A stretch of DNA of 64,000 bases from Thalia democratica (lineage: Eukaryota): contig OZ241832.1 of assembly GCA_965202585.1 (NCBI GenBank), positions 36,394,001 to 36,458,000 of the forward strand, written 5' to 3'. Shown here piece by piece: positions 57,661 through 63,835 of the stretch. The first letter of the stretch is position 1. Each line of letters begins with the position of its first letter. Both the position numbers and the translations under genes were made by a program. The notes beneath the pieces were generated by a model. That model saw only the letters and a program-made list of their open reading frames with translations, was not told where the DNA came from and ran no database searches.

Positions 57661-57801
57661 TTAATCAAAAAAACTGACTTTTAGTCATTTAACCTAACAA
57701 AAAACTAACTTTTGGTCATTTTTACCCCAAAATAACTGACTTAGCCAGATTTTTTCATATTTTTTAAAAAAACTGACTTAGCCTGACCCGTGGCAACCCT
57801 G
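57661..57801 (-). mobile_element. hAT/Tip100-like terminus with subterminal AACTGACTT repeats
   Basis: Reverse complement begins CAGGGTTGCCAC; about four aact(g/a)actt copies adjacent; related tagggatgccac at 63424. No second end found. Confidence 0.45.
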
Positions 57802-58526
57802 ATACAAGTTTAACAAACTTTTGTGCCCGATTTTTTATCTATTCTACATAAGCTTATGTTCTGCTAAATTTACTTTTATTATTTTAGCTAAAAGTTTCAA
57901 AAATTAACGCTTGTTTTTTAAACACATAACATATACTAATTTAATTGTATAGATTAAAGTCCATTACAAATTTACACAGTTTTTGTAAAACTTATCAGAT
58001 AAAACTAAAATGTTGAAGCATTTTGTTATTTTTGTAAATATTTGAATTATGTTAAGTAAATATTTTTGTTTATAAAAGGTGTCAATTCAATGACAATTTT
58101 ATGAACTATTTAATTTTTAATTTTTAACATATATTTTTTAAACTTTTGTTTATTTTCATTTAAACAAACAAAACTTGTTTTTTTTAATAATTCTGAAGTT
58201 TTCTACTCAATAAAGAATTGAGAAAAGTAAAAATAAATTTAAATATTAATTTATAGACACTAAATATTTATATATATTGTTTATAAGATAATGATATCTA
58301 AGATTTTTCAAGAACATTTTCCATAAAACTTTTTAAGAAGCTCAGAGGTATTGTGGCCATGTTTTTATTAATCTTAAATTAAACTTTATTTTACTTATTT
58401 ACTTTACTGTATCAATTAAAATTATTATAACATAAATGATAATAACGTTATCAGTATTTACAGAACTAAATTAAAGTTCTTAATCACAAAAAAAAAACAA
58501 AAGTTTAAATAAAATGTATTACATTG

Positions 58527-58532
58527 TTTATT
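58527..58532 (-). terminator. Candidate polyadenylation signal for PFDN4
   Basis: AATAAA on the minus strand about 210 nt after the stop; such hexamers are common in AT-rich DNA. Confidence 0.3.
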
Positions 58533-58739
58533 GATAGCTTAAATTTTCTATTTTGTATAAACAAAATTTCAATTAATATTTAAACCAAGTTTCGATCATT
58601 AAGTACTTAGTAAAGATATGTAAACACTTCTACTAACAATAAACAGAGAACTTTAAAAAAATTTGCAAACTGCAGCTTTTCTAAAAAAGTGTGTATCAAC
58701 AATATCGTATGCAAATAACTTTTATGAAAACAAAACAAA

Positions 58740-59372
58740 TTAGCTTTCCAGGTTGATGTTGTCGCCGAACTTGGCGTACAGCTGCGTCTTCAGCTCCTTC
58801 ATCTTCCCCTCCACCTCTCCCCGCTCCCCCTCCAGCTTCCTCCGCTTCCCCTCCAGCTCCTCCTTCAGCTGCGCCAGCAGGTCGTTCACCTCCTCCTGCG
58901 TGCCGTCCATGAACGTCTCGCCCATCTGGAACGGCACCTCCTCCTCCTCGTCGTCCAGCATCAGCAGGTCGTTCTCGGCGTCCTCCGCGTTCTCCATCTG
59001 GCGGTGAAAATTTTTAAATTACGATACAAATTAATTTGGTCGAAAAGTTCTACATTTAAAAAAAACGGCTTACTGCGTGCGTGCTGGCTTTTGAAAAATT
59101 TTTACTTACAGCCAGAAACTTGCAAGGTAGCTGTAACTGATCCGATTTTGTCTTGGTTACGTAAACAAGTAAAAGCTAAACAACTAAAACCGTTAAAAAG
59201 AACCAACTTGTTTGTTTAAAGCAAGCAGTTTAGACTTCAAATCTCCAAGTTCAATGTTGTATTGAGCAAACATGTTAATTTTTTTCTGGTCTTCGAATGT
59301 AACTTTCTGCTCCTCTTCTTTACCACTTGGATTCATTGACAATTTTTGAACTTTCTGTGTTGCCATGTCCAT
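58740..59372 (-). CDS. PFDN4: Prefoldin subunit 4, 2 exons, 140 aa
   Basis: Exon 1 59208-59372 (MDMATQKVQK...VTFEDQKKINMFAQYNIELGDLKSKLLALNKQ), 210-nt GT-AG intron, exon 2 58740-58997 (MENAEDAENDLLMLDDEEEEVPFQMGETF...LKTQLYAKFGDNINLES). VTFEDQxKINxFA and LYAKFGxNINLE are PFDN4 signatures. Confidence 0.93.
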
Positions 59373-59807
59373 AGTAATGTTTTATTTTCTATTAGGAATA
59401 TGTTGTATAAATCAAGCTTGAGAAAAAAACTTATAAATAAAACATTTAAGTAATTCAGTATGATTAATAAACTCTTTATTTAATTGCGAAACATTATTAT
59501 GATTTAGTTATGCTTAAAATAAATACATATTGAGCATAGTGTATAAGTACATAAAAACAATTTTACAGAAAAAAGTTTGTTTTTAAAAAGCTCATTAAAA
59601 AAAATCATGAAATCGTTCATGTATTTTGAGGCTGACTAAGTACATTTATTTCAATATTCTTAAATTCTTAAAATGATTTAAGTTAAAACATGTAGGAATG
59701 ATTTTTAAGTGTTTGTACTTTGCAGAAGATTTCTTAAACAGCAATCAGGATGTAAAATGAAAAATAAAAATCTTGTAATTTAGAACTTGTTTTACAGTTA
59801 TCAATGA

Positions 59808-62800
59808 TTAGTATGCTGGTATTTTCACCAAAAGGGACATCACTTCATTCCCTTTAGTGCACCTTCCGTCGGCAACATCACAAGTGTATCCGTTTGGACA
59901 ACAATGAATGTGATCATCACAGCAAACAGCATTTGGTTGAGGGCAGCAACCATATCTTCCATCAGCCATTTTACAACAAGTAGTACCAGTTGGACAGGAA
60001 GAGCCATCTCCGCAATCTACAGATTCTACATCGAAAGAAAGCTTTGGTTGGTTCATAGCTGGTTGTTTCACCAACAATGACATTACATCATTACCTTTAG
60101 TGCACCTTCCGTCAGCAACATCACAAGTGTATCCGTTTGGACAACAATGAATGTGATCATCACAGCATACAGCGTTTGGCTGAGGACAGCAACCATATCT
60201 TCCATCAGCCATTTTACAACAAGTAGTACCAGTTGGACAGGAAGAGCCATCTCCGCAATCTACAGATTCTACATCGAAAGAAAGCTTTGGTTGGTTCATA
60301 GCTGGTTGTTTCACCAACAATGACATTACATCATTACCTTTAGTGCACCTTCCGTCAGCTACATCACAAGTGTATCCGTTTGGACAACAATGAATGTGAT
60401 CATCACAGCAAACAGCGTTTGGTTGAGGACAGCAACCATATCTTCCATCAGCCATTTTACAACAAGTAGTACCAGTTGGACAGGATGAACCATCTCCGCA
60501 ATCTACAGATTCTACATCGAAATAAAGTTTTGGTTGGTTCATAGCTGGTTGTTTCACCAACAATGACATTACATCATTACCTTTAGTGCACCTTCCGTCA
60601 GCTACATCACAAGTGTATCCGTTTGGACAACAATGAATGTGATCATCACAGCACACAGCGTTTGGTTGAGGGCAGCAACCATATCTTCCATCAGCCATTT
60701 TACAACAAGTAGTACCAGTTGGACAGGATGAACCATCTCCGCAATCTACAGATTCTACATCGAAAGAAAGCTTTGGTTGGTTCATAGCTGGTTGTTTTAC
60801 CAACAATGACATTACATCTTCACCTTTAGTGCATCTTCCGTCGGCAACATCACAAGTGTATCCGTTTGGACAACAATGAATGTGATCATCACAGCAAACA
60901 GCATTTGGTTGAGGGCAGCAACCATATCTTCCATCAGCCATTTTACAACAAGTAGTACCAGTTGGACAGGAAGAGCCATCTCCGCAATCTACAGATTCTA
61001 CATCGAAAGAAAGCTTTGGTTGGTTCATAGCTGGTTGTTTCACCAACAATGACATTACATCATTACCTTTAGTGCACCTTCCGTCAGCTACATCACAAGT
61101 GTATCCGTTTGGACAACAATGAATGTGATCATCACAGCACACAGCGTTTGGTTGAGGGCAGCAACCATATCTTCCATCAGCCATTTTACAACAAGTAGTA
61201 CCAGTTGGACAGGAAGAGCCATCTCCGCAATCTACAGATTCTACATCGAAAGAAAGCTTTGGTTGGTTCATAGCTGGTTGTTTCACCAACAATGACATTA
61301 CATCATTACCTTTAGTGCACCTTCCGTCAGCTACATCACAAGTGTATCCGTTTGGACAACAATGAATGTGATCATCACAGCAAACAGCATTTGGCTGAGG
61401 ACAGCAACCATATCTTCCATCAGCCATTTTACAACAAGTAGTACCAGTTGGACAGGATGAACCATCTCCGCAATCTACAGATTCTACATCGAAAGAAAGC
61501 TTTGGTTGGTTCATAGCTGGTTGTTTTACCAACAATGACATTACATCTTCACCTTTAGTGCATCTTCCGTCGGCAACATCACAAGTGTATCCGTTTGGAC
61601 AACAATGAATGTGATCATCACAGCAAACAGCATTTGGTTGAGGGCAGCAACCATATCTTCCATCAGCCATTTTACAACAAGTAGTACCAGTTGGACAGGA
61701 AGAGCCATCTCCGCAATCTACAGATTCTACATCGAAAGAAAGCTTTGGTTGGTTCATAGCTGGTTGTTTCACCAACAATGACATTACATCATTACCTTTA
61801 GTGCACCTTCCGTCAGCTACATCACAAGTGTATCCGTTTGGACAACAATGAATGTGATCATCACAGCAAACAGCGTTTGGTTGAGGACAGCAACCATATC
61901 TTCCATCAGCCATTTTACAACAAGTAGTACCAGTTGGACAGGAAGAGCCATCTCCGCAATCTACAGATTCTACATCGAAAGAAAGCTTTGGTTGGTTCAT
62001 AGCTGGTTGTTTCACCAACAATGACATTACATCATTACCTTTAGTGCACCTTCCGTCAGCTACATCACAAGTGTATCCGTTTGGACAACAATGAATGTGA
62101 TCATCACAGCACACAGCGTTTGGTTGAGGGCAGCAACCATATCTTCCATCAGCCATTTTACAACAAGTAGTACCAGTTGGACAGGATGAGCCATCTCCGC
62201 AATCTACAGATTCTACATCGAAAGAAAGCTTTGGTTGGTTCATAGCTGGTTGTTTCACCAACAATGACATTACATCATTACCTTTAGTGCACCTTCCGTC
62301 AGCTACATCACAAGTGTATCCGTTTGGACAACAATGAATGTGATCATCACAGCAAACAGCGTTTGGCTGAGGACAGCAACCATATCTTCCATCAGCCATT
62401 TTACAACAAGTAGTACCAGTTGGACAGGAAGAACCATCTCCGCAATCTACAGATTCTGCTTCAAAATAAAGTTTTGGTTGGTTCATAGCTGGATGCTTTA
62501 CCAATAATGAAACAACATCACTTCCTTTTGTACAATGACCATTTGATACATCACAAGTGTAGCCATTTGGACAGCAGTGGACACCATCAGCACAACACAC
62601 AGCGTTTGCTTGTGGACAGCAACCATATCTTCCATCAGGCAGTTTACAGCAAGTTTCACCAAATGGACATGATGAACCATCTCCGCAAAAAACAGATTCA
62701 ACAGAAAGTTTTGGTTGATTCATAGCTGGATGCTTTGCCAATAATGAAACAACATCATTTCCTTTTGTACAATGACCATTTGATACATCACAAGTGTAAC

Positions 62801-63287
62801 CATTTGGACAGCAGTGGACACCATCAGCACAACACACAGCGTTTGCTTGAGGACAGCAACCATATCTCCCATCAGGCAGCTTACAGCAAGTTTCACCAAA
62901 TGGACATGATGAACCATCTCCGCAAAAAACAGATTCAACAGAAAGTTTTGGTTGGTTCATAGCTGGATGTTTTACAGACAAAGACACTGAACCTCCTTGC
63001 TTTGTGCACCTTCCATCAGCTACATCGCAAGTGTATCCGTTTGGACAACAATGAACGTGATCATCACAGCACACAGCGTTTGCTTGAGGACAGCAACCAA
63101 AAAGACCATTTGGAAGTTTGCAACAAGTTGAACCAGACGGGCAAGTAGAACCGTCTCCACACTGAACTGTGCTGTAAGCACTTGGCTTTTTCATTTGGAT
63201 AACTTCATTTGAGTTTGATGATTGAACATGAAACGAACAGACTGATGAGACCAAAATGACTAAAAGGCTGACTAAGATTAATCTCAT
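59808..63287 (-). CDS. GRN: Progranulin, single coding exon, 1159 aa, 14 complete granulin domains
   Basis: Signal peptide MRLILVSLLVILVSSVCS from ATG 63287 (the ORF-track start at 63359 lies upstream of an acceptor tttttcag at 63320-63321); 14 copies of the 12-Cys granulin motif C-x5-C-x5-CC-x8-CC-x6-CC-x5-CC-x5-C-x6-C; stop at 59808. Confidence 0.95.
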   Translation of the reverse strand: MRLILVSLLVILVSSVCSFHVQSSNSNEVIQMKKPSAYSTVQCGDGSTCPSGSTCCKLPNGLFGCCPQANAVCCDDHVHCCPNGYTCDVADGRCTKQGGSVSLSVKHPAMNQPKLSVESVFCGDGSSCPFGETCCKLPDGRYGCCPQANAVCCADGVHCCPNGYTCDVSNGHCTKGNDVVSLLAKHPAMNQPKLSVESVFCGDGSSCPFGETCCKLPDGRYGCCPQANAVCCADGVHCCPNGYTCDVSNGHCTKGSDVVSLLVKHPAMNQPKLYFEAESVDCGDGSSCPTGTTCCKMADGRYGCCPQPNAVCCDDHIHCCPNGYTCDVADGRCTKGNDVMSLLVKQPAMNQPKLSFDVESVDCGDGSSCPTGTTCCKMADGRYGCCPQPNAVCCDDHIHCCPNGYTCDVADGRCTKGNDVMSLLVKQPAMNQPKLSFDVESVDCGDGSSCPTGTTCCKMADGRYGCCPQPNAVCCDDHIHCCPNGYTCDVADGRCTKGNDVMSLLVKQPAMNQPKLSFDVESVDCGDGSSCPTGTTCCKMADGRYGCCPQPNAVCCDDHIHCCPNGYTCDVADGRCTKGEDVMSLLVKQPAMNQPKLSFDVESVDCGDGSSCPTGTTCCKMADGRYGCCPQPNAVCCDDHIHCCPNGYTCDVADGRCTKGNDVMSLLVKQPAMNQPKLSFDVESVDCGDGSSCPTGTTCCKMADGRYGCCPQPNAVCCDDHIHCCPNGYTCDVADGRCTKGNDVMSLLVKQPAMNQPKLSFDVESVDCGDGSSCPTGTTCCKMADGRYGCCPQPNAVCCDDHIHCCPNGYTCDVADGRCTKGEDVMSLLVKQPAMNQPKLSFDVESVDCGDGSSCPTGTTCCKMADGRYGCCPQPNAVCCDDHIHCCPNGYTCDVADGRCTKGNDVMSLLVKQPAMNQPKLYFDVESVDCGDGSSCPTGTTCCKMADGRYGCCPQPNAVCCDDHIHCCPNGYTCDVADGRCTKGNDVMSLLVKQPAMNQPKLSFDVESVDCGDGSSCPTGTTCCKMADGRYGCCPQPNAVCCDDHIHCCPNGYTCDVADGRCTKGNDVMSLLVKQPAMNQPKLSFDVESVDCGDGSSCPTGTTCCKMADGRYGCCPQPNAVCCDDHIHCCPNGYTCDVADGRCTKGNEVMSLLVKIPAY
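59820..63150. repeat. Coding tandem array, 243-bp period (237 bp for the first two units)
   Basis: 81-aa units (79 aa for units 1-2); units 4-14 differ almost only at synonymous sites. Confidence 0.95.
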
Positions 63288-63835
63288 GCCTATTTTTAGA
63301 AATTTTACACAAATTAAATCTGAAAAAGTAAGTAAAGCCTTAAAATAATTAACAAACAAAATCAGCTCAAGCTCTAAACAGTTAAATAAATATTATAAAT
63401 ATACTTAAAAGCTTTTCAATAACTAGGGATGCCACACTTTCAGTCAAAAAAAACTGTTCTGAATGACAAATAACTGTCCTTAGTAATCCTGAATTCTTTA
63501 AACCTTTTTAGAAAAATTTTAAATACTTTTTTATTAATTAAATAAACATTTTAAAATTTAAGTTTTTTTACAAAATGGTTATAAGTAAAGTATAGAAACT
63601 GGAACACCTAAATTTCATTCAAGATCTAGAAAAAAAACAGGACTGAAGTTTTCAGTTAAAAACTCTTTCAATTGTCCAGAGCTTTTTCTACAAAAACCAA
63701 ACTAGCCCAAGTCATCTTGAGTTTTTCAAAAATATTTAAAGTGTCTTGAGTATACTGAGTATCGAGAGCATGTTACGACCCTAGTTGACCTACTAAACTT
63801 ATCAAAACATTAACAAAACAAATAAGAAAAAATAC

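Follow-up and report, generated by a model that had tools for sequence, protein, structure and literature searches.

Coding-limited edges of a GC3-saturated exon in the PFDN4 gene of the salp Thalia democratica

Introduction

How does a single exon of a small gene come to carry G or C at nearly every third codon position when it lies in very AT-rich DNA, and why does this composition end at the stop codon? The exon in question is the second exon of a prefoldin gene in Thalia democratica, located in a window of 64,000 nucleotides (contig OZ241832.1, positions 36,394,001 to 36,458,000, assembly GCA_965202585.1). An initial annotation, made from the letters of this window, described it as a sharp-edged island and offered a narrow hotspot of GC-biased gene conversion (gBGC), an exon-restricted mutation or repair bias, or a foreign or retro-copied template as candidate causes.

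A 2026 comparison of 38 tunicate genomes found that thaliaceans have a broad, high-reaching gene-level GC3 and have lost several base-excision repair genes (PMC13746493). In that work the GC3 distribution of Thalia democratica is wide and rounded, the ENC-GC3 plots reach high GC3 in three salps, and the cause of thaliacean GC3, selection or gBGC, is left open. The published analysis was made per gene; here we consider exon-scale mosaicism, edges limited to coding sequence (CDS) and the polarity of substitutions, none of which is described in PMC13746493 or in two Salpa genome papers, where composition is not discussed (PMC5174732, PMC10686999). A literature search on exon-confined gBGC and on the composition of salp exons turned up no account of exon-scale, CDS-limited islands.

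Our reading, to which we give a probability of about 0.9, is that the exon is native and single-copy, that its saturation is the tail of a genome-wide pattern, that the island was inherited, and that a bias from A/T to G/C (W-to-S) acting on coding DNA only maintains it.

Results

The gene lies on the minus strand and is PFDN4, as had been proposed. The coding part of exon 1 (59208..59372, ATG at 59372-59370) comprises 55 codons, that of exon 2 (58740..58997) 85 codons followed by TAA at 58742-58740. In a comparison with relatives of solved structure, exon 2 aligns with residues 47-130 of human PFDN4 (E 2.7e-15), and residues 10-45 are covered by exon 1 (E 0.01). The two matches are collinear, and no prefoldin subunit other than PFDN4 is among the solved-structure matches listed for the two exons. 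Pfam PF01920 (Prefoldin_2) is matched at 58761-59021 with 50.1 bits, above its cut-off of 27.6. The intron (58998..59207, 210 nt, GT..AG, 34% GC) is placed by an oligo-dT RNA contig from a marine sample, which joins 59208 to 58997 and skips 210 nt with ends CT..AC on the plus strand; RNA contig coverage of exon 1 is 59208-59355. This spliced contig confirms the two-exon model and its join. The metatranscriptome RNA contig X6 spans 58510-58874, and the 18 untemplated T preceding 58510 place the poly(A) tail near this position, about 20 nt past the AATAAA signal at 58527..58532 (TTTATT on the plus strand; 17-22 nt upstream of the cleavage site). X6 thus defines a 3′UTR of about 230 nt (58510..58739, 22% GC) within the same last exon, which measures about 488 nt.

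DNA contigs of two separately labelled studies span both edges of the island, at the stop codon (58528-58763) and at the acceptor (58734-59015 and 58986-59215); read support here means assembled contigs rather than raw reads. Exon 2 is single-copy in the 802-Mb genome assembly. A weak second match on contig C1 (L002) proved to be an unrelated GC3-rich coiled-coil exon and no paralog. Exon 2 is the native, expressed, spliced and polyadenylated last coding exon of PFDN4. A search of 57800-59800 against Rfam gave no match. We note that exon 2 starts exactly with ATG (58743-58997), so that metagenome gene callers give it as a stand-alone 85-residue ‘protein’ (P0001, P0002), with exon 1 called apart (P0006, P0009); such calls are a trap for protein databases.

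In exon 2, 83 of 85 codons end in G or C, the exceptions being GGA (codon 60) and GAA (codon 84), against 20 of 55 in exon 1. The longest uninterrupted run of such codons is 59. GC1 is 0.68 and GC2 is 0.22. There are 20 CpG in exon 2 (observed/expected, o/e, 0.95) and one in exon 1 (o/e 0.21). GC in 100-nt windows is 0.61-0.67 within exon 2 and 0.13-0.26 across the 700 nt past the stop. At the 3′ edge the coding sequence ends ...GAAAGCTAA and is followed directly by tttgttttg; the island therefore stops mid-exon, at the stop codon, the G/C-rich part of the last exon being the coding 258 nt only, and AT-rich 3′UTR continues the same exon. On the 5′ side the island reaches about 9 nt into the intron, where caccgccag (58998..59006, minus strand) precedes ATGGAG. 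These last nine nucleotides of the intron are the sole spill of the island into non-coding DNA. Between 34.4 and 64 kb of the window the island is the only 90-nt stretch above 0.55 GC. Its coding score ranks second among all minus-strand segments, behind a far longer granulin open reading frame (ORF), and is the highest per codon. The codon counts, the GC contrast and the sharp edges in the initial annotation, that is all of its numbers that could be checked, were correct. Its argument that the encoded helix is enriched in Gly/Arg is weak: GARP residues number 15 of 85, against 11 of 84 in the human segment aligned with it, and among the polarised changes on the window lineage a single one (GAG to GGG) is both non-synonymous and W-to-S.

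Five marine metagenome contigs contain the orthologous exon, four at 96% amino-acid identity (L003-L006) and one at 88% (L007). All have 78-81 of 85 codons ending in G or C and flanks of 21-34% GC, and they repeat the island edges seen in the window, with a matching C-rich acceptor and a TAA that likewise leads into T-rich DNA. The marine transcript P0003 joins both exons at the same point, and P0001-P0003 of the relatives carry PF01920. The intron position is the same and both the flanking intron and the 3′UTR can be aligned. Compared with the closer relative, third positions differ at 8 of 85 sites in exon 2 and 7 of 55 in exon 1, while 35 of 189 aligned intron sites differ, in addition to indels. 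The two exons are about equally similar to those of the relatives and therefore have one shared history. Judged from these alignments, the island is inherited and common to two related species. More distant PFDN4 homologs from marine metagenomes and plankton (P0004, 47% identity; P0010, 49%) have GC3 of 0.36-0.43 and lack the island, which is therefore confined to a close, shallow clade.

The comparison also revealed some local features. In L003-L006, codons 39-43 of exon 2 (approximately 58869-58883) contain six differences in 13 nt (GAC CTG CTG GCG CAG against GAA TTA TTG GCC CAA): three G/C-to-A/T (S>W), one G>C and two not polarised to the sister lineage. Their clustering suggests that they arose in one event, either a multi-nucleotide change or a conversion. 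Two short blocks of the 3′UTR (58662-58698 and 58708-58721, minus strand) are kept in all relatives, including the 88% species, and the remainder is fast-evolving and AT-rich. One block has ATTTGCAT, which is octamer-like; the other has GCTGCA followed by TTTGCAAA. A G/C-rich block in the intron at about 59063-59094 (minus strand ...AGCCAGCACGCACGCAG...) is kept in the close relatives and in part in L007; it has no Rfam match. The GC of the intron is as high as 34% because of this block.

Coding DNA elsewhere in the genome was sampled by Pfam searches with Pkinase, RRM and Prefoldin_2. The genome-wide figures given here rest on 62 loci from these three families together with the window, which is not a random sample. 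Among 56 in-frame domain segments the median GC3 is 0.51 and the extremes are 0.17 and 0.96; it is at least 0.90 in four segments and at least 0.80 in 11. Two of 45 independent ORFs hold an 85-codon stretch with at least 83 G/C-ending codons, and one has an unbroken run of 104 of them, against the 59 of PFDN4 exon 2. The flanks are about 20-30% GC whatever the GC3 (rho 0.12 and 0.13 between GC3 and GC 30-300 nt outside the ORF). Averaged over 12 GC3-rich ORFs, the fall from about 0.55 to 0.23 GC is complete within 15 nt of the ORF end, and in individual cases composition is seen to switch at start codons, stop codons and splice sites. When segments of the same Pfam domains are compared, GC1 goes up with GC3 (rho 0.53, P 3e-5). 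Single ORFs can vary internally, for example from 100% to 20% and back to 95% in L023, which has a dip mid-ORF. Apparently intronless genes are also GC3-rich, and many long intronless ORFs are AT3-rich. A rise of GC3 with exon length finds no support in these samples, rho being −0.26 in the 56 domain segments and −0.14 in 43 predicted exons of the large FRAS1-like neighbouring gene of the window. In this neighbour, on the minus strand and with exons predicted by a noisy in-house exon finder, GC3 runs from 0.29 to 0.91; several of the 3′-most exons are AT3-rich, and there is no simple gradient from 5′-AT to 3′-GC.

PFDN4 exon 2 is an extreme, not an exceptional, member of a genome-wide GC3 continuum. 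Third positions in this continuum go from about 20% to nearly 100% GC between exons, and even between blocks of a single ORF, beside introns, UTRs and intergenic DNA of 20-30% GC. The initial reading is supported in part: saturation and sharp edges are real, but the exon belongs to the upper tail of a continuous distribution in which sharp edges are the rule. That such exons might be the common upper tail of GC3 in this genome had been named as an outcome that would undo the claim, and the continuum over 56 segments together with the two equally saturated ORFs in 45 shows this largely to be so.

Some further observations concern the neighbourhood and the sampled loci. The intronless multi-granulin gene at 59811-63392 (minus strand, 1183 codons) has GC3 of 0.25 and CpG o/e of 0.42. 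It ends about 430 nt upstream of the PFDN4 start codon, so the two genes nearly abut and have opposite composition; RNA contigs over 59395-59742 are probably granulin 3′UTR. Contig C3 has none of the 287 Pkinase and RRM matches listed, although all other large contigs of C1-C10 have many. Large arrays of apparently intronless kinase copies are found on C8 (12-17.8 Mb and 53.5-53.8 Mb) and C6 (13.4-13.7 Mb).

Within blocks with GC3 of at least 0.8, G- and C-ending codons are about equally used in GCN, ACN, TCN, CGN and CCN, with G/(G+C) of 0.47-0.61; only CTG and GTG reach about 0.7, and GGC exceeds GGG. There is no avoidance of NCG codons. That G and C endings are used about equally, that GC1 shifts and that exchanges between G and C look neutral (below) together indicate a pressure on G/C content rather than on particular codons. 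At synonymous contexts in loci L011-L070, CpG o/e is 0.98-1.00 in GC3-rich ORFs against 0.50-0.59, an approximately two-fold depletion, in GC3-poor ORFs and flanks, and in the Pfam sample CpG depletion tracks GC3 (rho 0.46). The pattern suggests that germline methylation may be mosaic by gene. The large FRAS1-like neighbour varies in GC3 from 0.35 to 0.91 in this CpG comparison yet is nowhere depleted in CpG, and methylation was rejected as a general cause.

The direction of change was assigned by parsimony with L007, the 88% relative, as outgroup, and all substitution counts are small. In exon 2 the window lineage has two W>S, no S>W and two G<>C changes, and the sister lineage five S>W, no W>S and two G<>C. 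If the 83 G/C third positions evolved as the intron does, about 8.6 S>W changes would be predicted per lineage; the window lineage has none (P ~2e-4) and the sister lineage three at third positions (P ~0.03). Exchanges between G and C affect 4 of about 83 third positions, which is no rarer than the 1 of 48 in the intron. In a trio of GC3-rich kinase paralogs, W>S changes per site are 3.1 times as frequent at third positions as in the flanks (P 0.01), and S>W changes are 0.56 times as frequent, a difference that is not significant (P 0.12); at these rates GC3 would settle at 0.73, against 0.78 observed. When haplotypes or paralogs are compared in pairs, divergence at third positions is about 0.7 times that of the flanks in GC3-rich genes and about equal to it in a GC3-poor gene. 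These substitution counts point to an ongoing AT-to-GC fixation bias confined to coding DNA. Such a bias had been anticipated, and both the polarised exon 2 changes and the kinase rates support it.

Non-coding DNA differs between haplotypes by 2-9% mismatches, with an indel every 100-300 bp. Intron haplotypes differ at 21 of 231 aligned letters (the two X3 contigs over 58986-59215 have 1 and 21 non-window letters), 3′UTR haplotypes have eight mismatches and 14 gap letters in 236, and the flanks of haplotype or paralog pairs contain 9-31 indel events per 2-3 kb.

Discussion

The cause of the bias is less certain than its presence. It is quite possible, though short of an even chance, that it is a drive of the gene-conversion type with heteroduplex tracts confined to coding DNA. 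Such a drive would account for the excess of W>S over S>W relative to neutral DNA (2:0 on the window lineage; 3.1-fold in the kinase trio), for the equal treatment of G and C, for the rise of GC1 with GC3, and for mosaics within one mRNA or ORF, as seen between the PFDN4 exons, in the large neighbouring gene and in L023. The narrow gBGC hotspot first put forward for exon 2 finds support in the W-to-S excess and in the equivalence of G and C; the spill into the flanks that it implies is absent beyond about 9 nt. In known gBGC landscapes (honeybee, birds, mammalian isochores) the GC of introns and flanks rises and falls together with GC3 on a scale of kilobases. The salp resembles these in its W-to-S fixation bias with G equal to C, in the pull on non-synonymous sites and GC1, and in the heterogeneity of GC3 among and within genes. 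It differs in that its flanks are blind to GC3 and the shift takes place within about 10-15 nt of the CDS limits. Classical gBGC fits the exon contrast within one mRNA, the equality of G and C and the GC1 shift; it fails on the blind flanks.

Confinement of the tracts would be an auxiliary hypothesis added to gBGC. In the reading that we favour it would come from heterology: the AT-rich surroundings, with their 2-9% mismatches and frequent indels between haplotypes, would be too divergent for tracts to extend. Conversion would then end together with the conserved coding sequence, that is at the stop codon on one side and just inside the intron on the other, and each exon would reach its own equilibrium, set by how often breaks are repaired across it. 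In its strictest form, which we regard as unlikely but worth stating, heteroduplex could form only across conserved coding DNA in this hyper-polymorphic animal, giving sharp-edged, exon-by-exon GC3 islands. In humans, poly-A length heterologies are reported to change recombination outcomes in one experimental study (PMC6485458).

Several observations argue against a drive. Adjacent non-coding DNA is free of the bias, with only about 9 nt of intron affected, a 3′UTR at 22% GC and flanks that ignore GC3. For equilibrium GC to go from about 22% to 98%, the scaled bias would have to shift by about five (in 4Ne units) over some ten bases, so conversion tracts of ordinary length are insufficient unless their ends are fixed. 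Exon 1 is as conserved between species as exon 2, yet is AT-rich; heterology alone thus fails to explain exon 1. In X3, exon 1 and its upstream flank are found on a single contig of intermediate depth, and may therefore be homozygous there too. Edges at start and stop codons are, moreover, what selection on the translated sequence predicts.

Such selection, acting on the synonymous G/C content of the translated region, is a real if tentative contender. Its targets might be the efficiency or accuracy of translation, codon-dependent mRNA stability, or, the genome being AT-rich, the avoidance of coding sequence that could be mistaken for intron or for a poly(A) signal; it would be unusually effective if the effective population size is very large. 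The edges match the limits of the CDS (start codon, stop codon and splice sites), the flanks are unaffected, and the 2-9% haplotype divergence of non-coding DNA suggests a very large population. In codon selection of the Drosophila type, preferred codons end in G or C and introns are AT-rich, and selection is expected to be strong in very large populations. GC3-rich CDS, AT-rich introns and an effect that stops at the stop codon are common to both; exons of 36% and 98% GC3 in one mRNA, the lack of a single preferred codon in most fourfold families and the common use of NCG are not. The first of these is a difficulty for selection on synonymous G/C content too, the mRNA being constitutive. The roughly equal G and C endings, the shift of GC1 and amino-acid usage with GC3, the adjacent 1183-codon granulin gene at GC3 0.25 and the many long AT3-rich intronless ORFs also tell against it. 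Selection that keeps exons GC-rich is documented in other animals (PMC4338330). The exon-intron architecture described there shares with the salp its GC-rich exons, AT-rich introns and sharp splice-site edges; in the salp the magnitude is much larger, the island stops partway through the last exon, and apparently intronless genes show the effect too.

An exon-targeted mutation or repair bias, in which chromatin-coupled repair or a difference in germline methylation would lower G/C-to-A/T mutation on some exons, appears improbable. It would agree with the near-expected CpG of GC3-rich ORFs against the depletion in GC3-poor ORFs and flanks, a contrast repeated between the two PFDN4 exons, and with the reported lack of several base-excision repair genes in thaliaceans (PMC13746493). 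To move from 22% to 98% GC by mutation alone, however, would require a more than 100-fold shift in the mutation ratio, and the per-site W>S rate is itself raised, beyond what a lowering of S>W alone would give. The neighbouring large gene is mosaic without CpG depletion, so methylation fails to track GC3, and chromatin is blind to the position of a stop codon.

Replacement of exon 2 by a foreign, paralogous or retro-copied GC-rich template has the contrast in composition in its favour, and that alone. We reject it as very improbable: the 802-Mb genome offers no second copy or donor, the relatives share the island, the intron position and alignable flanks, third positions differ to a similar extent in both exons, and the same composition recurs in many unrelated genes. 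An assembly chimera or contaminant is contradicted by the contigs of two studies that cross both edges, by RNA contigs that tie the island to exon 1 and to the AT-rich 3′UTR, and by independent metagenome contigs of the same structure, and we reject it as having next to no chance of being correct.

Conclusions

The PFDN4 locus is an ordinary housekeeping gene, and what is unusual is the pattern repeated across the genome, in which the fixation bias appears to climb from near zero to about five (4Ne units) in the space of some ten bases. One practical consequence is that screening the salp genome for foreign DNA by composition will produce many false positives. The pattern bears on whether GC3 variation in animals reflects biased gene conversion or selection, the classical version of each failing one test here. 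If heterology does set the limits of conversion tracts, a natural experiment on tract length and repair bias would be available in very polymorphic marine animals, and PFDN4 exon 2, which three species share together with flanks that can be aligned, would offer a compact test.
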